Part shown: positions 11,788-64,000 of the stretch, in pieces
How the letters are laid out: each line of letters opens with the position of its first letter
How positions within the stretch are numbered: position 1 is the first letter of the stretch
DNA from: Phallusia mammillata
Taxonomy: Eukaryota
Length of the DNA: 64,000 bases
Direction: 5' to 3'
Assembly: GCA_965637545.1 (NCBI GenBank)
Contig: OZ281500.1
Location: 9,238,001 to 9,302,000 of the forward strand
Notes under the pieces: model-generated
Told to the model about the DNA's origin: nothing
Databases searched by the model: none
Seen by the model: the letters and a program-made list of their open reading frames with translations, nothing else
Position numbers and translations under genes: made by a program

Positions 11788-13155
11788 AATAATGTCTACA
11801 AAACGTATTCCTGTACAGAATATAATTAAAAACGGCGGTTTAGGGTTGTTGGGCATTAGATAAAGTCCAGCAACTAGCTAACTTAGTTGAGTAATTTTAT
11901 TTTTTTTAAAGACACAGAGTTTAGAGTCAGGAAATTTAAAGTCACTTACAACTCTGGTCTTGATTGTGTGATAACTAAAGTGATGTGATAAAATTCTGTT
12001 AAAATTACGACTTTAGCAATAAAATTAATGAAAAACCCATATATCGTATATAAAGACCCATATATCAACCCATATACTATATAACCCATATGGTCGAACA
12101 CCAAAAATAGTCGCAGTATATTTGTAACTAATTGTTTTACATAAAAGATGAGCTTCTAAAATAAAAATTCACATTAGACTCAGTTATATTTATCATAAAA
12201 CCTTTAACAACCGTTACCCATAATCATCATGAGTTTCGTGTAAATTGCATTTTAAAAGTTTTCTAATGCTCTTTGCGCTGCCTGTCGGTATTTAGTTCAA
12301 CTTTGTTTGATGTTAGTTGTCACGTTAGTAGATTTTCCTTAAATAAAAGTTTAAAATGGTCGCTGCAACAAGTAACTCGGCCAGGTGTGTATATTTCAAA
12401 AGGGGGCCAAAAAAATTCGAGAAAGAATGTTGTGACGCAATACAAACTGAATTAAAAACATATGAAAAAAGCATTTTAAAATTTTCTACACCAGATGCAA
12501 TTCCCTTGTTCAGTAATCCACTTTATTGGAACAGCTGCAAAACGAAAATTAATGGCCAATTAATAATTACACCCCACGGGGAGAAAACGAAAATGTTTTC
12601 CAAAATTTTGCGCAGACCATAATCAGCAATGTGGGAGAGGAATGCATGAATTTAGTCTATGACGTTTTACAAATGTTTTCTGGTCAGCTGATCACTTTAA
12701 TTTATCGACATCGTGTTTGCTGCTTAACGCGACAAGGTATAGTTGTATTTTACGTCACATCGACAGGGAAATTCGATTTATCGATTTAAGCTTCCCTGGC
12801 TGGAACGTTTTCAATAAATATTTAATGGTGGCACTCCTAAAACCATCGACATTAAGTACAGGCCCCGTAAGGGAAGGATAAATAATTCATAGCAGCAAGT
12901 AATTCTCGACAGAGATTCACTGGGAATTTTTTGCTTTAGCGTGAGTTGCGACAGGAGTTCCGTGAGCATAGTCGATGAACGTTTCAAAATTGACATTTGA
13001 GCCGTTTTATTTCGCGCGGTCGGTATAAAATGCTGAGAATAGATATTTTAAGTTTTATTGACAAGTTTCCAAATACTGTTTTTATTTTTCAGCCTTAAGT
13101 TTATTTTCTGAATTTCTTGCACGAATTTGTTTGTCAGATAGAGTTGTCGTCGAAA

Positions 13156-15880
13156 ATGTTTCCAAGATCGAAACACAAGTCACCAGAGCACAGAAATGCA
13201 CAACAGTGCAGCGATAATGCTGAAGTACCGAAGTATTACGACTTCAGTAACTTAGAACCGATCAATGAACTGACGAGGGGGCGATTTGGCAGTGGAACCT
13301 TACTGGTGTATGACTGGTGCGAACAAACCAACTTTGTTGCCAAGCGTGTTTCGAAACTAAACCGGACTGCATGGAATCAAGAAATCCAAACCTATTTGCG
13401 CCTAAGCGCCTCACGTTATTTCGTGAAGTTTCTTGGTACTCTTCCATCTTCGACGCATTGCTTTCAGTTTCTAATGGAACACGTGATGGACGGAAACTTG
13501 TTCGATTTGGTGGTTCCCAATGTCGGATTGCCAGATCAGGCTTGCAAGCACATCGTGATGCAGGTGAACAAATGCCACGGGTCGTATGTCATAAACACAT
13601 CTCAAGTTTTGCAAATGCCGAAATGCTTTTGTGCAATATTAATAATAGCAGCAATTCTTCAAAAAAATGTGTTTGATATCACCCACTTAGCCCAATTGAC
13701 AAACCTTTACATGAAAGGACATCAAGGCTGTAAACAGAATTAAGTCATGAATATAAAAGGGTGGCTTTAAAATCTATTTAAAATGCAATGCACAACTACA
13801 TTAATACACTTCTGTTATATCGGGCAAAACGATTAAAACTGAAGAGTATTGGTTTACTCTGCTTTTTATATAGTTAGGTATTTTGTTTGATAACTTTGAG
13901 AAACCAGCGTAAAGAATATTTGTCATACTAACGCTATAAACGTATTTAAAATGACTCAAGCCGTGGCCCCTTAAAAGTATATTTTAGGCCTGGTGGACCC
14001 CTTTTAATGACAATGTAAGATCTGTGGTCCCCTGCAAACTCGTGTAAAATATGGTATTATTTCGGATTTAAACAAGTTAAATAGAGTAAACAACAAACTG
14101 TAAACGTGACAAACCTTAATATGGATAAAGAGTGTTAGGGAGTAAATATATTTGCAGCATACACTCAATTCTGCGCATTATAAAAGAACATGACTTATTG
14201 ATTTTCGTGGATGCTTCTGGTGAGGCTACACCCGTGGCCGCCCGGAATACAGCACGTGGCCTCCTTGGAGGGGGGCGAGGGCCCCGGTTGAGAACCATTG
14301 GACTAGAGTTTATGTCTAGTTGAAATTGTTTACTGAAAAAAGCGCACTTGAGTGCAACTAACTAAATTCAGTTGCATTTTATCACCAATTTATTGACAAA
14401 TTAATGAACCTTAAAGTAATTTTACAGCTACGAGATGCGCTTGAGTATCTACACAACAAACTGAAGATAATCCATGGAAATTTGTGCCCGCATCATGTTC
14501 TCATATCGTCGATGACTCATTGCCACATCAAGTTGTGCAGTTTCTCCAAATCGCACCCCATTGGCGCCTGCGTAAAGAAAAATGTGAAAAAGGGACGTGC
14601 TCATTTGCCCCCGGGAAGCGCTGCGGAGAGTTTAAAACGACTCCGTTCGTTTCTTAAACATCGCACTTCGTCACTAACTTCTAACGATCTTCATTCTTTG
14701 TCCTCAAGCGAGGTACAAAATAATGCATTAAACAAAGTTTTTTGCGCAAAACACTGTACCGAATAACATAAGGTATTTACTTTTTAGTCTACATGGAGCC
14801 CACGGTCAAATCGCCAGACTCCAACGTCAGAGCGCAGAAGACACTCTGTACTTCCGATCCAAAGCTCCGCCGACGATGAACTCCAAGCCGAAGTGCACGA
14901 GTACACAGTACTGGACATAAAACGTGAAATTTCGTCTGAGATATTCTCCAATGCCTTTACAGCTCCTGAGCTCATCAACGCCAGTCGTTACATTGCTTCT
15001 CCTGCCTCGGACAATTGGTCATTGGCTATTCTGGCTGTTTACATAATGACGGGAACTACACCGTGGGAAAATGCGTCGGTCGATAATGCCAAGTATACAA
15101 CATTCATTCGTTCCACGCGTCGCTCGCACAGCTTAAGTCCCATGCTGTCGTCCAAGGTGAAAAGCCGGCATTCGCTATGGAGTGCCAAGCGATCTTTGTC
15201 GCTGACCAGTGTGTTCAGTACGTTTCGAATGTGGGGAGGACGCGATCGCATACTCACAGTGGCCTTCGAGAAAAAAATTATCGAAATCCTTCAGACCGAC
15301 CCAACATCGAGGTAAGCTTAAGTTTTAAATTGTTTAACCAGCTTCGATACGTAATTAGGGCAAATCTTAACTCCTTTATCTTCCAAAGCTATTTTAATTT
15401 TCGAAATTTCTTTGAATGCCACATATTGCTAAGTATATTGAAGTGCAAATCAAATGCACCTCACTAATAATATTGAAATGAAAAGCTGCCTTGATCATGC
15501 TGTAAGCAAAAACGCACTCTACGATGATGATAACATAAAACAGAAGCATCGGCCCGAAATCGATGCCAATTGAATTTCCTGTCATTCGATTGACGTTGAA
15601 ACACAGAAGTCCGGATTTATAAGGATTGTTTCTTCCTGTATCTATTCAAATATATTTTGGAATAATATATATGACCTGATATATATATATATGTTGCGAA
15701 TGAGACCTTTGTTCACCTGCTGTTGATGTACCAATGTCATGTGCTGCGTTTCAATTGTTTTGCAGACAAAGCCTCAACCTCCCAGACGAATGGTTTACGC
15801 GAAAATGGGGATTTAACACACAAAAATGGTCAAATTACCAAGACCGCTTTTTCGACGAAACATGGATGAAAAATAGTTAG
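13156..15880 (+). CDS. SBK (SH3-binding kinase)-family protein kinase-like protein, predicted pseudokinase, 443 aa
   Basis: Exons 13156-13563, 14428-14712, 14788-15311, 15766-15880 (1332 nt, in frame). GNLFDLVVPNVGLPDQACKHIVMQLRDALEYLH parallels recalled SBK1 [58 protein letters not shown] and LQTDPTSR mark subdomains VIII, IX and XI. The catalytic loop reads HGNLCPHH and the DFG position reads SFS. Confidence 0.85.
13950..14300. mobile_element. One-ended hAT MITE remnant in kinase intron 1
   Basis: Right TIR-like GGTTGAGAACCATTG ends at 14300, with GGCCCC/GGACCCC subterminal motifs upstream. Left end and TSD not found, so the left boundary is approximate. Confidence 0.4.
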
Positions 15881-31591: not shown

Positions 31592-33224
31592 GACAGACAG
31601 AAATCGCTGGCAAGTAATAAATAAAGGAACAATTATTTGCTGTATATTTGACACATGTAACAATGTAATGTCTTCAGTTCTGTTCAGTTCAGTCCATCGT
31701 CATTCAATTCAGCTTGGCCAGGGGACTTTTCTGGTACTTTTTGTCCCATGAGCGTGACGATATTTCACTTTGAGTATACCGTAACAAAGGATTTACATTT
31801 TGTCTATTAGCGAGTAGTTGCCGTGAAACTTTTCTTTGCAATTTAACATCACTTCACTTACGTACAATATGGCGAATTGATTACAAGATGTCACTAAAAT
31901 TGACACTATTAAGCGATAAAGAACTATACACCTACAGCCAATTTTCATATGTGAAGATTGAATTGTTCTATTCTATGTTTAAGTGAAGAAATAGTTCGGT
32001 GTGTTTAAATATACTATTTTACCCACACACCTTTAGTATGTAATGCAGCGAAAATCGTGTTAAGACAATGGCCACTAAAAATGAGGACGAATATAAACTC
32101 CAGATCACCAGCAGCCTATTTAGCCTTTTTCAGTTGGTGAGTATATTTTTTACTTAACATTTTATTAAATCACGAGCACAGGACTATGTTGCTACCAGTA
32201 AAATTTAAACGTAACTTGTTGATTAACCTGCACTTTTTCCACCATTTTAAGAAATAACACCAAGCGGAAGTGCTGACTAAACCTTCCATACAATTTATCA
32301 TCCACTTAATTCTGCTGATTCGCCAGTAAGGTGTAATAACGACCAGCCAACGAAAGCATATACCATCAATAAACGAGTAGAAAAAAATCACTTTTTAAGT
32401 GCTCTGTGTACATGGCGCAGCAGACTATAAAGCGGAAAAAATAACAACAAAAGTATAAGGAGTAAGAAAGGACTTGTAGCAACCAAAAGTACACAGACGT
32501 ATCTGAAATCTTCAACTACAAAGTGGAACTTGGATTTCAAAAACATTTACATAAATTATTCGGTGGAGGCCGCCCAACTAAGTCGCTGAAAAACAAAATT
32601 ATGCTTTCGAACGCATGAAAATTGTCGAAGCAACACGATAACTGCTTGAGCAAACAAAAATGAGGCATTCTCGTACAACAAAAGGTAAGAGAACGTTGCG
32701 AAACTAAACAAGAGTATGAGAAGTGGACGAGAACGTTGCAAAATTGTTGGCACATAATATTATCTTGGTACGGCACTTCCACGCCAAACAATAACGAACA
32801 GTTGGCGAAGGGCGATTGCTGTATATAGCGAAGTCATCGGACAGGATGAAACTGCATTCCGATGCAAAGCAGTGGAAATGATGTGGCATAGCGGTGTGTG
32901 GCAGCAGCACTGTACATTTCGGATTGGGTTGTCGGTTTGTCGCAGCACCGAGTGGCTAAAAACTGAGATCGCGGTGTCAAATAAATACTGAAAATGGATA
33001 GGGTCGCAAAACAGTGTAAATCATAGCGTGAAAAAAAACAGGTACGCGGCACATGAGAAACGGGCGATACACGGAAATGCCGCAAAGTTTCCGAGTACAT
33101 GTGGAAAGGAATGGCGCACAAAATTTGATAGATTAATTAGCATTGTGCCGGGTGGTTGGCACCGTTCTGTGCCACCAATAAGGCTGAACTCACAAAAGAA
33201 AAAAAATGTGCTAGAAATCAAAGA

Positions 33225-40262
<7,038 letters not shown>

Positions 40263-47900: not shown

Positions 47901-49521
47901 CATTCCAGCACCAGCCCGTACCAGGCGCGAGTCGATGTCATCCACGCCATGCCAATTATCAATGGTCACGATTTCGAATCTTACACCTGCTTTACGAGGC
48001 AACGCGAGTTCGGGACGCAGACGAAACAGAGGCCATGTCCCACAGGTCGGCACCTATTTTCGGCTGCCGCGTTCTTGTAATCGTTGCTATATCGGCGCCG
48101 CGCACTCAAAAACAAAATGACTAAGCCAATATTTGACATTGAACTCCGCGTCTTAAATTTTAATCACTTCCCGGTGGTCCGTGTTCAATGCAAGGCGGAG
48201 TGCGTAAAGGTATTTGTTAACTGACCAATAAAAAGCCTAATGTATTTAGTTAAGTGACCTAGAATACACGGAAAAGCGTATATCGTCGTTTGGGTATTGT
48301 CGTTTATAGTATCCATTTACCCTATATAAGATCCAACATTTTGTTTCTAAAATGAAAAAAAACTTGTTAGAAAAATAAAGCATAGTTTGCAATAGGGCCA
48401 CTACCACAACAACTGGTTTCTGGATGATTACTGTTCTTAAGATTAGCATTATCCAAACTTCCAATGTAAAAAAGACCTAGTTCGAAATATAATCAACATT
48501 AGGCCTCTACCCAATTTTGCACAAAAAAGCCTTTAAATTTCGGAAATTTCCTTGTTCAAATCAAAATCTTATGGAGAACATAGGCTATGGTTGGTAAAAA
48601 AGGTTTCTACCGGACGATTCTGTTTGACCCAGGATTCTATACACTGATTTTTTAGATTTGGTTATCAGCTGAAACCTTCACAAAAACATATGTTGTGCAG
48701 AAGCACTTATGGTCGTTACCCGACAAACTTTAATCTAAAAACCATTCGAACTCAATGTTTGTTTCCTTGCTTTTCAGCCAAGGATGTCCCTGATTGCAAA
48801 TCCCCATCCGTTTTGGAAGTCCTGGTGTGAAATTGCTTTTGCCATCGATTGCGAACTCAGGCAAGTCGATCAGAAACGGAGTTTTTTGCATTGCTTCGAC
48901 TCAGGGGCGCCGTTTGTTGACAATTAAATTATAACAGAAACAGAATATATATCACAGCAGATAAAGTTAAAAACTATATCGCCTAGGCCCGTAAATTGGT
49001 GATGTTAAGAATAAGAAATAATTTGTATAATGGTATAACTTTGCCTTCAATTCCCAATGTCCTTTCGAAGAAATGCTAACAAAAGGATTTAGGTGTTGAC
49101 GGCCAACTCATCTTGCAATTGACGCTTGCAACCTACCAGTGTATAAAATAAGAACAATATTTTTTAAATTCAAGGTTTATTTAAAGGTGAAGCAAATCTA
49201 TGACTGTTATTATAAGCTAAGCTGCGACTGTTTTTAATGGCCTATGAACCCGAATTTTACATTTCTATGACTTGGTCACGTGATTAAATCGCTTGAATCT
49301 GCTTTCTGTGGTTTAGGTAAAAGTGTCTTGTTAAGGAAGTAATTGTAATTTGCAATTTGCTGCTGACTAAATTAAAAACTATGTTTTATAAATTATTTAT
49401 TGTACAGGGGCTGCCGTATTTGGTGCAAATGTAGCACTGCAGTACATAGTCAAAAGACCAAGGTTTTTTTTTTATCAATTGGCAGCTTGTTTTGCTTCTG
49501 TAGTTGCTTTTCATTGCAAAC

Positions 49522-53712
<4,191 letters not shown>

Positions 53713-58394: not shown

Positions 58395-61318
58395 TTAACA
58401 ACCACATGTTCCTTCAGACTGAGTTCGCAAAACTTCCTTGTCAACTGACAGAACAGTTGCCCTGTTCATTTTTGGATAGTCCTGAGTCATCATAGGTTTT
58501 TGGCACTTCAGCTTATGTGCCAATGTAAGAAATATTGCTTCAACGTTATCACATTCCTTGTCTTCCTTGGCAGAAGTTTCAAACAGGGGCATTGAATGAG
58601 CATCAGCAAACCTTTGGGCAATGTTTGTTTCAACCTGCACAACAATCACATAAGCCTGTTGTATTTTTCTTTTTTTTCTTATTTTTCAATTAATTATGTG
58701 ATGAAATTTTTGTTCAGATTGTTGATAAATCATACTTGTAGCAGGTCTAATTTAACTACGAAAAATTGCATCCACCTGTACTTGATTGGTGAGATCACAT
58801 TTGTTTCCCACCAAAATGCGTGGCACAGAGGCATTTAATGAATGTTGGTCGCATTCCTCTAACCACATTGGCAAGCCTTGAAAAGATGCGAGCTAACAAA
58901 AAAAGTTAATTAATGAAATGAACAGATTTTTTACCCTTTTTATGGTTTAAATCAGCGGTTACCAAACTGGGGTCCGTACAGCAGTTTTCGAGAGTCCGCA
59001 ATGAGAATTAGTCTTAAAAACTTTAAAGCAATTTAAGAGGGCCCACAATGTACAGCAATGATTGCAATCACAATTGTAATTCAATAATAAACCTTGTTTT
59101 ATGTTAGTCTTTAGTTAGCGAATGTTTTCAACATTATAGCTGTATTATTATGCTATACTAGAAAAAAATATGCTTGATTATTTGGTATCATAGGGTGTTT
59201 TAGGATGTTTCTTGTGACATCATAAAGCATATATTATGCTGCACTACCAGCTATCGGCGAATCGTTTGCATTAGTTAGAAAGTTGTTACGTTAAAAGAAT
59301 CGTGACTGCATTAGTGTACTATAAGAAACATGGGTTTTGTATTTTTCCTATAGTATTCTTAGATTTTTATATGGCTGCAAAATATCAAAATAATTGCCAC
59401 AAGGGTCCACCAGTCAAAATTCTTAGAAAAGTTTGGGAACCGCTGGTTTAAATACAACATGTACCTTCGTAACATCATAGGTAAATACAACAGCATGGAC
59501 ATTTCTGTAATAATGAGGCACCATTGACTTTCTAAACCGCTCTTGTCCAGCTGTGTCCCACAGTTGCAACTGCAACAAAAAATTCAAACACTTTGCAACA
59601 CTGTTACAGAGACAAAATAAATCACACTGCAGAAAGAAACCTACAGATAAGGAATACTGGTTCCTTTAATTATTAGAAGCGCTCTGCTTTGATAAGAAAG
59701 GCAGCAAAACATGTGAAATTACGTAAATTGATGAAGGCAAGAGTTATTGGCAAACTGGTTTGAATGCATGTCACATTTGAGTTCATGTTTGCTGACATAA
59801 CAATTAAGCAGGAAAAGTAATTATCTAATCTATGTGGAAATACAGACAAACAAACAAACCCGGAAGGGTGAATAAGCATTCACATCCTTTGAACATACAC
59901 TATATATACATTGCCTATTTTGAAAGGAGTATAATATCTTTTTATACAGGGTCTAATATTTGTTAATATTTCTGTGAACAGAAACTCAGAGATACCTACA
60001 AATCAAAGTTGCATTTCATGATATAACCATGGAAAGTTTAGTGCAGGGAGGTCAAACACAACAATCAAATTTAAACTACAGTTGCATATTTAAGACATAA
60101 GTTGCTTATCTTCTACAAATACAAATTGTTCAAATTTTATCCATGCTTTAAGGAAGCAGGTGGGGTTACATTCCACAAACTATCAAATACTTATAAACGG
60201 CTAGCAAGGTAGCCACAGTAAAACAAATCCATTTTACCTGTGTGTCGCTAACAATGAATGTTAAATAACCTTTTTTATAACACGGTTTCGGTTAGAGAAC
60301 GGGTCCTATATTTAAAATGAGTCTCATTTACGTGAGACTTATTATAAATACAACATAAACACTGGATAAATAGTGTATATATGGGAACCAAATTTTTGCT
60401 AAAAAACACAGCACTAAGTTTGCTTTGCCTTAATTAGTTCTCCATCAATATCAACAGTTCGTTCACGAAAGTCAACTCCTATAGTAGCCTCTGTTTTGTC
60501 AGGGAATTTTCCTGCACAAAATCTGAATACAAAAACAAATATAAATGGTTTGCATGTAGCATTGCAGGTAACGGCAACACATCTATGCGATAAAATGGGT
60601 TGAACGCTTGGATATAGTGCTGGATTAACCAGTAGGCAAAGTAGGCACATGCCTAGAAGTCAGTCAAAAATCCAGGCCAGTTGCTACAACGATCTTTGTG
60701 ACAATGATTTGGCAACACTGATAATTCTAATTTTTTAGTTGGCAACTCTGATATTCAGGTTATAAAATGTGCCTACAGGCCAGTGGACTGTTAATCTGGC
60801 ACTGCTTGGATATGAGGCTAAGAACATCATTGTGTTAATAATTTTAATAGTTTTGCAACTCTGACAAAGAGTGGCTTAAGTTGCTTACAACATAGTTTAT
60901 TTTTCTTTACATCGTTACCAATCCTACTGTAAAAAATATGTTGCCTGTTTTAAACTTTTATTAGTTTTTTTAACTACCAGTAGTCCTTATGTTAAAGTTA
61001 CTGTTTGTTTATGTTACCAATAGCCTTTAAACTGAAGATACTGTGTTTATGTTTTTGGTTAATATAAACAAATTGTTAATGGTTATGTTACCTCCCAAAT
61101 AATACATGTATAATCAGTGACAAAATTGTTACAAACAAAATTTAATTTTTTTAATGGTTTTTGCAACAACATTTGTTTTTATCATATTCCTGAATACTTG
61201 GCACTAAAATGTACCTGTATGTCAAACATGTTTTTCCTACATCAGAATCCCCAATCACAATAATTTTAAAAACTTTTCGCTGAACATCTTGGGCTTCTTC
61301 ATCAACGTTTTTTGCCAT
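58395..61318 (-). CDS. RAB33: Ras-related protein Rab33, 219 aa
   Basis: Exons 61318-61215, 60522-60429, 59569-59465, 58892-58776, 58634-58395 (660 nt). [85 protein letters not shown] and a C-terminal CGC are Rab33-diagnostic. Intron 2 has a GC donor. Confidence 0.95.
58953..59445. mobile_element. hAT Buster-type MITE (493 bp) in a RAB33 intron
   Basis: TIR CAGCGGTTACCAAACT...AGTTTGGGAACCGCTG. Perfect 8-bp TSD gtttaaat at 58945-58952 and 59446-59453. Confidence 0.92.
60615..60804. mobile_element. Short hAT MITE (190 bp) in RAB33 intron 1
   Basis: Ends TAGTGCTGGATTAAC / GTTAATCTGGCACTG. Perfect 8-bp TSD cttggata at 60607-60614 and 60805-60812. Confidence 0.88.
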
Positions 61319-62853
61319 GACCTTATGTACCTAAAGTACAGTATTTGTAAAAGATAAATTAACTTTTATGTAAACAGTATCAGCTAAGTTGATGCATACA
61401 ACCTATCAATCATGTACATTAATGAGCACTGATTTGCAAAAGCTTGGTAAGTATATTTACAATTACAACCAAATACTTGTAAATCATTTTGTATAACTGT
61501 CTATAAGTGATAATGTGTCAGAGCAATGGTTTTTGTACCAAGTATAAAATACAATGCTTTTATTATGTCTTCTTAGATAAATGTTGTTTTACAATTAATA
61601 TGTGGTTTATGTTTTGACTTTACCACTAACAATTTTTAGGCATCTCACGATTGTAAAAAAAAATTAAAACTACCATGAATCATGCAAAAGGCTGAGTTCC
61701 CCAGAAATATCAAATAGAACTTGTCTAGCATTTTTGGTATTTAAACGATGTAACCATTTTGTACCTTACTCATAAATGGGTCACTATCATTCTTTGTATT
61801 TTGTTCAATCTCAATGTATGCCATGTGATAGAACAAAAACAATAGGTTTGCATTTGTGTTGTAAATACATGTTCCGAACTTATTACTATTGTTATTATTT
61901 GATTTCAGTTAAGGGTCAAACATGCATTACATTTCATAGCTGCTATGACAAAAATTGGAGACAGTTGTATAAAGAATATTACAAACTGATTCTGTGTGAA
62001 TGTGGATAACAAAGTGTTAACATCAAATTGAAATCCATTTGGAATTAAACGGTGTGTGTAAATTATCGTAGGTTAGTTGATAGCACACTGCTTGGCGACA
62101 ACACTCATTTCCAGGCTATGTTTTGAAAACAACAAGTGCACTTGTTCATGAACAGTGTGGCCTAACAAATGCTGCAAAAATTGCTTAAAATAATACAATG
62201 CTTAATAGAATACCAAGCGACTTGTCTATCACAAACTAATTCCGGCTTATTATTTACCAAAACGTCGTTTTGTCGCTACAAACTCGTTTTTTGTTTGTTT
62301 ACGAACTTATACATGTTACATTTTTGTCAACTATATTTACATAAATTGGTGAACCGAGACCAACGCGGGCAATCAGGCGTAAATTATCTGAAAAGATGAT
62401 AAATAAGAAACTATAACTGAAACTATAACTAATTACCGCGGTTTAATTAACAATCTGCGAATATATTGGAGCCCAATTACAGCTTATAGCCAATTATCTA
62501 ACTTAAACACTACAGCGCAAAACGTTGTATGTTGAAAGTGTTTAGGACGCACGATAAACAATATACTTTGTTCAATGAAAATCGCAGGATATTACCCATG
62601 AAATTCCGATTTAGTTGTGTAGTTGTGCAAATTGAACTATTCCGTAGTTACTGGGAACGATTTAAAATAACAATTTCTGAATCAGCATCCTGTATTTCGC
62701 CAGAAAGCACATCCCGGCAATTGTGTTTGTCATTAAATCGCACGTGGAATTAAACGAATTGTATAATGTACATAAATTTTCGAACGTTTTAACGGAAAGT
62801 TTATTGCGGGGATAGATTTATTCGGCTGTTACCTAGAAGTGAGATAATTTGGC

Positions 62854-62861
62854 TATATAAA
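62854..62861 (+). promoter_or_regulatory. TATA box of the WYD-repeat gene
   Basis: TATATAAA lies about 40 nt upstream of the ATG at 62899, which fits a TSS near 62885 and a very short 5' UTR. Confidence 0.6.
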
Positions 62862-62898
62862 TGAAGCTCGCAGTCATGCCTTCACCAAAAGCATCAGC

Positions 62899-64000
62899 AT
62901 GCAAGTTTTGACGTATCTTGCCGTCGTGTTGGTCCTGGGATCCCAGGTATCCCAAGGTCTCCCGAAAAGCAAACATGGTAAGTCCAAGAAGCCTCATACT
63001 TGGTATGATTCGGCTGACTACTGGTACGATTCGGCCGACTACTGGTACGATAACAAGCCTATGAATGACCATACTTGGTACGACTCATCTGACTACTGGT
63101 ATGATTCATCTGATTACTGGTACGATAGCAAGGCCAAGAAACCTCATACATGGTACGATTCGGCTGACTACTGGTACGATAGCAAGCCCAAGAATGACCA
63201 TACCTGGTACGATTCGGCTGACTACTGGTACGATAGCAAGCCCAAGAATGACCATACCTGGTACGATTCGGCTGACTATTGGTATGATTCATCTGACTAT
63301 TGGTACGATAGCAAGGCCAAGAAACCTCATACATGGTACGATTCGGCTGACTACTGGTACGATAGCAAGCCCAAGAATGACCATACCTGGTACGATTCGG
63401 CTGACTACTGGTACGATAACAAGCCCAAGAATGACCATACCTGGTACGATGCGGCTGACTACTGGTACGATAGCAAGCCCAAGAATGACCATACCTGGTA
63501 CGATGCGGCTGACTACTGGTACGATAACAAGCCCAAGAATGACCATACCTGGTACGATTCGGCTGACTACTGGTACGATAGCAAGCCCAAGAATGACCAT
63601 ACCTGGTACGATTCGGCTGACTACTGGTACGATAGCAAGCCCAAGAATGACCATACCTGGTACGATGCGGCTGACTACTGGTACGATAACAAGCCCAAGA
63701 ATGACCATACCTGGTACGATTCGGCTGACTACTGGTACGATAGCAAGCCCAAGAATGACCATACCTGGTACGATGCGGCTGACTATTGGTACGATAGCAA
63801 GCCCAAGAATGACCATACCTGGTACGATGCGGCTGACTACTGGTACGATAACAAGCCCAAGAATGACCATACCTGGTACGATGCGGCTGACTACTGGTAC
63901 GATAACAAGCCCAAGAATGACCATACCTGGTACGATGCGGCTGACTACTGGTACGATAGCAAGGCCAAGAAACCTCATACCTGGTACGATGCAGAGGAAA
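62899..64000 (+). CDS. Uncharacterised secreted Trp/Tyr/Asp-rich tandem-repeat protein (open at the right edge; at least 367 aa)
   Basis: Stop-free frame from ATG 62899: MQVLTYLAVVLVLGSQVSQG (signal peptide-like), LPKSKHGKSKKPHT, then 17 units of (WYDxxDY)1-2-WYDxKxKxxHT from 63001 to 63981, then WYDAEE. Differences between copies at TAC/TAT, GAT/GAC, TCG/TCA, GCT/GCC and ACC/ACT/ACA are synonymous only in this frame. Confidence 0.88.
   Translation, partial: MQVLTYLAVVLVLGSQVSQGLPKSKHGKSKKPHTWYDSADYWYDSADYWYDNKPMNDHTWYDSSDYWYDSSDYWYDSKAKKPHTWYDSADYWYDSKPKNDHTWYDSADYWYDSKPKNDHTWYDSADYWYDSSDYWYDSKAKKPHTWYDSADYWYDSKPKNDHTWYDSADYWYDNKPKNDHTWYDAADYWYDSKPKNDHTWYDAADYWYDNKPKNDHTWYDSADYWYDSKPKNDHTWYDSADYWYDSKPKNDHTWYDAADYWYDNKPKNDHTWYDSADYWYDSKPKNDHTWYDAADYWYDSKPKNDHTWYDAADYWYDNKPKNDHTWYDAADYWYDNKPKNDHTWYDAADYWYDSKAKKPHTWYDAEE
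63001..63990 (+). repeat. Coding minisatellite of 21-nt and 33-nt modules (54-nt and 75-nt units)
   Basis: Fourteen 54-nt units and three 75-nt units. Unit starts are 63001, 63076, 63151, 63205, 63259, 63334, 63388, then every 54 nt to 63928. A partial unit starts at 63982. Confidence 0.97.

Follow-up and report, generated by a model that had tools for sequence, protein, structure and literature searches.

An apparently unannotated gene of Phallusia mammillata that very probably encodes a secreted WYD-repeat protein, with a possible role as an extracellular material

The 3' end of a 64,000-nucleotide stretch of Phallusia mammillata DNA (the whole stretch that was analysed, referred to below as the window) carries a long repetitive reading frame, and the question it raises is whether this frame is a gene and, if so, what its product might do. 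Translation of the plus strand revealed that the frame, named WYD here after the residues with which its repeats begin, occupies positions 62899-63999 as 367 codons with zero stops. The features of the locus are as follows.

62854-62861, plus strand: putative TATA box TATATAAA, read in the sequence, approximately 38 nt 5' of the ATG
62899-62958, plus strand: start codon and predicted 20-residue signal peptide, from the translation, with cleavage after SQG
62959-63000, plus strand: Lys/His-rich N-terminal piece LPKSKHGKSKKPHT, which looks like the tail of a long module
63001-63981, plus strand: repeat array with 37 modules, all in frame (20 of 21 nt, WYDxxDY; 17 of 33 nt, WYDxKxKxxHT), from Tandem Repeats Finder, translation and a pattern count
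63982-64000, plus strand: post-array residues WYDAEE..., with the frame open at the end of the window and the C-terminus and stop beyond it

The initial annotation had proposed a TATA box, a signal peptide ending in SQG and an uninterrupted frame, and each of these was recovered: the TATA box lies at the listed position, the frame runs to the end of the window without a stop in the translation, and the N-terminus fits the hydrophobic-core and -3/-1 rules. An in-frame stop (62845-62847) is located just 5' of the putative TATA box, and the ATG at 62899 is the first ATG downstream of that stop. The predicted signal peptide has the core LAVVLVL, with a Kyte-Doolittle mean of approximately 2.7 over nine residues, and a cleavage context of Ser at -3, Gly at -1 and Pro at +2; this signal peptide call is a heuristic one, combining hydrophobicity with the -3/-1 rule.

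The repeat part resolves into 38 pieces that each start with WYD, comprising 20 short modules, 17 long modules and a final WYDAEE that is off-pattern. All short modules read WYD(S/A)(A/S)DY (21 nt, n = 20), while the long modules (33 nt) comprise 13 copies of WYD(S/N)KPKNDHT, three of WYDSKAKKPHT and one of WYDNKPMNDHT. These counts match the 20 WYDxxDY and 17 WYDxKxKxxHT modules previously proposed, with the qualification that WYDNKPMNDHT carries a K-to-M exchange, so that 16 of the 17 long modules fit the strict WYDxKxKxxHT pattern. Short and long modules follow one another in varying order along the array. Tandem Repeats Finder identified a 54-bp period at 63293-63992 (13 copies, 95% matches, 0% indels) and more diverged periods of 21, 75 and 183 bp at the 5' end; the 5' third of the array is thus the more diverged, while the 3' two thirds consist of near-identical 54-nt units that are 95-100% identical to one another. 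The corresponding 18-residue unit carries two Trp, three Tyr, four Asp, two Lys and one His. An array of this kind would evolve by unequal crossing-over or gene conversion. A degenerate DNA pattern encoding WYDxxDYWYD was matched 20 times in the array and 0 times in 100 shuffles, and a pattern scan found it nowhere else in the 64-kb window. Regarding the extent of the array, the initial annotation was right that the frame is open at the end of the window, with one correction: since the repeats stop at 63981-63992 and are followed only by a closing WYDAEE, the WYD repeat part appears to lie wholly inside the window, with the C-terminal end and stop beyond.

An open frame across such an array proves little in itself, since tandem repeats keep frames open easily, and two of the five other frames contain just one stop each over 63001-63999. 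The WYD frame is the sole stop-free frame, and the sole one that is continuous with the ATG, the hydrophobic signal sequence and the putative TATA box. The lengths of all 37 modules (21 or 33 nt) are multiples of three. Alignment of the core W, Y, D, H and T codons revealed that five of 30 columns vary and that all five are synonymous third positions; with eight of the 30 columns being capable of synonymous change, the hypergeometric p value is 3.9e-4, which is indicative only, because repeat copies are not independent. Amino acid changes are confined to the x positions (S/A, S/N, P/A and ND/KP). The previously proposed invariance of W, Y, H and the core D residues was therefore borne out, and extends to T. 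The codon-aligned antisense frame constitutes a 229-aa ORF of hydrophobic repeats, and is interrupted by a TGA stop at each Ser-Ser variant encoded with TCA.

These observations bear on the possibility that the frame is silent or very young, i.e. a minisatellite that stands in frame by chance behind an ATG and a hydrophobic stretch, and that is either not transcribed or a recently born gene lacking an established function. In that case the locus would merely be a minisatellite with a lucky frame. The ease with which repeats keep frames open would be in keeping with this possibility, as would the near-identity of the 3' units, which points to recent expansion, the lack of a relative in the protein collections searched and the lack of a putative-RNA contig over the unique 5' part (see below). 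Conversely, the variation in the core codons is all synonymous and 37 of 37 modules are in frame, while the TATA box, first ATG and well-formed signal peptide are positioned exactly where a gene would need them. Furthermore, the divergence of the 5' modules indicates an array of some age, in which W, Y, D, H and T have nonetheless been kept. We consider a silent frame improbable, and conclude that the WYD frame is very probably a real coding gene, and apparently an unannotated one.

None of the 19 sequencing runs that share some sampled words was recorded as RNA. Four read runs were compared with positions 62000-63100 only, a region that stops short of the long repeat. Run X4 covers the promoter region evenly, which identifies it as DNA, and over the first repeats its depth increases approximately ten-fold, in line with an array roughly as large as the part in view. 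One repeat contig of 84-138 nt, at a depth of 6-10, was obtained from each of runs X17 and X18, which are tentatively regarded as RNA, and from X8, a small run; none of these contigs covers the unique 5' end (62820-63000). As the repeat unit is present 13 or more times, these contigs are consistent with faint expression or with carry-over of genomic DNA. The reads also disclosed sequence variation. At position 62974, X4 reads G for C, which replaces His26, shortly downstream of the predicted signal peptide, by Asp, and several further differences in the upstream region are consistent with a polymorphic population. In the 138-nt contig of X8 (63021-63074), modules are joined in another order (back 36 and 54 nt), which suggests either that the contig stems from a different stretch of the array or that individuals differ in the order of their copies. 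Another organism label, X16, contains 9% of the sampled words and may represent a close relative.

Searches for relatives of the WYD protein were performed at several levels. A Pfam scan at E values up to 10 assigned it to no family, and a word-indexed search of 5.8 billion protein clusters, covering targets of 202-642 aa, yielded 5663 candidates, none of which scored. An exhaustive phmmer search of 1.84 billion representatives returned 18 matches; the eight of these 18 that were inspected are unrelated tandem-repeat proteins of 15-39% identity in which WYD motifs are absent. The best score of an ESM Atlas feature search, 0.75, was uninformative. The WYD motif strings matched no paper in a literature search and are absent from the supplements of a shotgun proteome of the tunic of other ascidians, whose species may differ. 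Several known families were considered individually. The YD-repeat profile describes units of approximately 20 residues with a GxxxRYxYDxxGR-type consensus, and Rhs/YD-repeat proteins were ruled out by the empty Pfam scan, in which no profile of a known carbohydrate-binding module, cellulose-binding or otherwise, was matched either. A thyroglobulin-like hormone precursor of ascidians, considered for its Tyr-richness, is defined by Tg1 domains (PMC12992692), and was set aside since these domains are absent from the WYD protein. A sequence search of the PDB gave a sole match, the designed PQQ-like beta-propeller Scone-R (7awy; 21 bits, E = 8e-4, alignment accuracy approximately 0.5), in which the hairpin NPDGTEK-W is aligned with the turn KPKNDHT-W of the WYD protein. 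The repeat lengths differ (propeller blades of approximately 40 residues versus the 18-residue unit) and Pfam found no match to PQQ-like or WD-type propeller repeats; the alignment was judged to be repeat-on-repeat noise and at most a hint of hairpins. The initial annotation had recognised no named family, and this agrees with the lack of a Pfam match, homologue, PDB relative or paper. By sequence comparison, the WYD protein thus appears to be an orphan in the collections searched, which may lack unannotated genes of P. mammillata and other tunicates.

Scans of metagenome and prokaryote genome collections with DNA patterns identified DYWYD-type frames on three sequences (L001, L004 and L006). 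These frames share acidic aromatic repeats of the DYWYD type with the WYD protein, but have another period, and lack the Lys/His linker and, at the start of the ORF, a signal peptide; with a BLASTP E value of 40, they are considered convergent low-complexity sequences rather than relatives. The frame on L004 (279-923, with the same sequence on L001) is an environmental one of 214 aa that is composed nearly entirely of W, Y, D and E in DYWYDYE-type octads and is without a Pfam match. Immediately upstream of it, beyond one stop codon, is a frame of similar acidity, an arrangement that might reflect a variant genetic code. L006 (2353-4359, minus strand) encodes a 668-aa protein of a sheep-gut Lachnospiraceae with a C-terminal Y/D/W repeat tail that includes DYWYD.

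Structural models of the WYD protein were generated with AlphaFold without an alignment. The full-length model is all-beta (pLDDT 53) with one 12-residue strand per unit, while a model of eight repeats, also all-beta (pLDDT 65, pTM 0.56), displays a strand-turn-strand arrangement per unit, in which the strands YWYDS and NDHTWYD are linked by KPK and SAD turns. The strand layouts of these two low-confidence models disagree. Comparison of the eight-repeat model with the PDB by Foldseek gave no match at an E value of 0.001 or better; its top neighbours, all non-significant (E values of 0.09 or worse, TM-scores of 0.15-0.37), were the curli protein CsgA, FapC, left-handed beta-helices and ice-binding proteins. 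Beta-solenoids such as CsgA, FapC and the ice-binding beta-helices likewise employ approximately 18-23 residues per strand-turn-strand unit, although their motifs are entirely different from the WYD units and there is no sequence relation. The models thus offer beta-rich stacking of the WYD units as a lead rather than as a result.

The composition of the protein is extreme in its aromatic and acidic content: the 367 visible residues include 38 Trp, 59 Tyr and 72 Asp, which together make up 46.0%. The mature part employs 14 residue types (D, Y, K, W, S, A, N, P, H, T, E, L, G and M), and its visible portion contains no Cys, Phe or Arg; a recount gave counts identical to those of the initial annotation, which had reported 46% Trp+Tyr+Asp and the same three absences. 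The visible mature part amounts to 43.7 kDa, and the secreted protein would therefore be at least approximately 44 kDa. Its pI is 4.7, its net charge -34.6 at pH 8 and -7.7 at pH 5, and its GRAVY value -1.9; charged residues constitute 33%, aromatics 28%, Asp 20%, Lys 12% and Trp 10%. Despite the abundance of Asp, these residues occur singly between aromatics, and poly-Asp or Asp-Ser/Gly runs are absent. The protein contains neither an N-glycosylation sequon nor a WxxW or WxxC motif for C-mannosylation, and a C-mannosylated Trp protein was ruled out on the latter ground. At 20 Asp-Tyr sites, three acidic and 0-1 basic residues fall within five positions; together with the absence of Cys and sequons, these sites agree with the consensus for tyrosylprotein sulfotransferases, and by this consensus they would be candidates for sulfation.

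Such features raise the possibility that the protein acts by its charge, as a polyanionic ion or mineral scaffold, possibly with sulfated Tyr, rather than as a load-bearing matrix, and that it serves to bind Ca, Mg, Fe or V or to regulate a mineral phase or a granule phase. The Asp content and the net charge at pH 8 of the mature part are compatible with this function, and both His and Asp side chains act as metal ligands. The acidic context of the 20 Asp-Tyr sites is the classic one for sulfation, and ascidians do sulfate tyrosines, as exemplified by cionin (PMC8149874). However, the protein displays none of the poly-Asp runs or Ser- or Gly-rich acidic stretches of known acidic mineral-matrix proteins, its charge is partly offset by Lys, and it is not obvious how the high aromatic content would serve ion binding. 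Additionally, the Pfam scan identified no metal- or calcium-binding family. An ion scaffold is thus regarded as unlikely.

The 38 copies of Trp-Tyr and 20 copies of Tyr-Trp-Tyr that lie downstream of the predicted signal peptide suggest a different fate, in which a multi-copy precursor is cut to small aromatic peptides (W-Y, Y-W-Y or units of 7 to 18 residues) that are then hydroxylated or brominated like compounds of the tunichrome, clionamide, celenamide or morulin type. Clionamide (6-BrTrp-dehydrotopamine) and celenamide E, which consists of dehydrotopa-6-BrTrp-dehydrodopamine, have these Trp-Tyr and Tyr-Trp-Tyr skeletons, respectively (PMC3039461, PMC10531651). Clionamide and the celenamides are, however, sponge compounds, and the ascidian tunichromes listed in the same two sources are without Trp. 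The comparison with prohormones is likewise mixed: a signal peptide is present by the heuristic used, but dibasic or Arg sites flanking the copies and amidation donors are not, and the unit borders bear no mark of a cleavage site. The dibasic sites are limited to four KK pairs, each followed by Pro, and the mature part contains a single Gly. A multi-copy precursor is disfavoured given the absence of Arg and of a Gly amidation donor and the position of all four KK pairs before Pro, and we consider it very unlikely. A related proposal, to which we assign a similarly slim chance, is that the WYD gene provides the ribosomal backbone of a morulin-like blood-cell product, whose Trp-Tyr pairs would be brominated and hydroxylated and the chain possibly trimmed to W-Y or Y-W-Y. 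All 38 Trp-Tyr pairs could then give rise to 6-bromotryptophan and DOPA/TOPA, and these two kinds of modification, TOPA and 6-bromotryptophan, are combined in morulin Pm of an ascidian (PMC3039461). If correct, this would offer a first genetic handle on the synthesis of tunichrome-related catechol peptides in tunicates.

Compared at the level of sequence character, the WYD protein seems closest in kind to the secreted short-repeat material proteins of marine invertebrates, while being a member of none of these groups; it is set apart from them by the lack of a profile match, its acidic charge and a motif not found elsewhere. Mussel foot proteins of the Mefp-1 type and Pvfp-1 are also secreted and built of short tandem units with Tyr and/or Trp, Lys and Pro, but have no sequence similarity to the WYD protein and are basic, in contrast to its pI of 4.7. 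The WxxW motif is missing from the WYD protein, and a modified Trp is known from Pvfp-1 of Perna viridis. Classic DOPA adhesives are basic; the WYD protein shares with this type the secreted short repeats rich in Tyr and Lys, but not the basic pI. Acidic biomineral matrix proteins are characterised by poly-Asp or Asp-Ser/Gly runs, which the WYD protein does not have. Ferreascidin, morulin Pm and the tunichromes, compared by description only, are likewise ascidian and very rich in aromatics. Tyr/DOPA predominates in ferreascidin, which is not known to be rich in Asp, while the tunichromes are without Trp, as opposed to the 38 Trp of the WYD protein.

Of the three functions put forward in the initial annotation (a matrix, adhesive or tunic protein, a peptide precursor and an ion-binding scaffold), the first appears the most plausible, judged by composition and analogy. 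We give about an even chance to the reading that the WYD protein is a lineage-specific secreted material protein of the extracellular matrix, tunic or adhesive type; the sequence features are observed, and its function, fold, modifications, partners and location are inferred. The visible frame would then be the first, and possibly the only, exon of a gene restricted to this lineage of tunicates, and removal of the signal peptide would leave the 37 modules as a string. Aromatic stacking and Asp-Lys pairs may cause the units to form beta hairpins or a beta-solenoid-like stack, in which aromatic "stickers" would alternate with Asp and Lys, with one His per unit. At granule pH the protein would carry almost no net charge (about -8 at pH 5), and in sea water it would be strongly anionic (-34 at pH 8); owing to this pH-dependent charge it could be stored condensed and then spread on release. 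Once released, it could bind Ca/Mg, cellulose or other components of the matrix, and might be cured by peroxidase or phenoloxidase chemistry on Tyr and Trp, with Lys and His as nucleophiles. There are precedents for such chemistry: oxidised tunichromes have been proposed to couple to proteins and cellulose during tunic hardening and wound sealing, phenoloxidase has likewise been proposed to participate in both processes, and the Tyr-rich protein resilin is cross-linked by peroxidase (PMC10531651). Moreover, in the repeat adhesive Pvfp-1, 7-hydroxytryptophan appears to replace DOPA (PMC4275877). Counting against a material protein are the acidic nature of the WYD protein, as opposed to the basic classic DOPA adhesives, and the lack of a WYD peptide in the tunic proteome supplements of other ascidians. 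Other roles, for example in the egg coat or in defence, share the leftover probability.

If expressed, the WYD protein would rank among the most Trp-rich natural secreted proteins (10% Trp, 28% aromatic, 20% Asp). Secreted short-repeat proteins of marine animals have repeatedly given rise to new material chemistry, including DOPA, hydroxy-Trp, coacervation and metal curing, and little is known about the proteins involved in the tunicate tunic, wound sealing and larval adhesion. The Cys-free, repetitive aromatic and charged sequence should be easy to produce recombinantly and could be tested for binding of cellulose or ions, phase separation and oxidative cross-linking. Additionally, it provides proteomics with a concrete target mass, allowing for bromo-Trp, DOPA/TOPA and sulfo-Tyr.

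Analysis of the remainder of the window identified four further coding features.

13117-13743 and 14893-15315, plus strand: protein kinase domain in two exons (Pfam Pkinase, E 3.8e-5 and 1.5e-8)
36564-37184, minus strand: exon ending in a KLF/Sp-like C2H2 zinc finger (Pfam zf-C2H2, E 7e-4, below the gathering score)
49504-50361, plus strand: long exon with a MYT1-type C2HC zinc finger (Pfam PF01530, E 1.1e-10)
61151-61318 and 60414-60650, minus strand: two exons at the start of a Ras-family GTPase gene (Pfam Ras, E 6e-5 and 7.5e-5)

The GTPase at 60414-61318, which is putatively Rab33-like, judging by its motifs, has its start codon at 61318 and is separated from the WYD gene by approximately 1.5 kb. 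Since it is located on the opposite strand and points away from the WYD gene, the WYD array does not lie inside the GTPase gene. Finally, the G+C content is raised to 0.43-0.49 between positions 32000 and 48000, the block in which the zinc-finger exon at 36564-37184 lies, compared with 0.32-0.39 elsewhere in the window.
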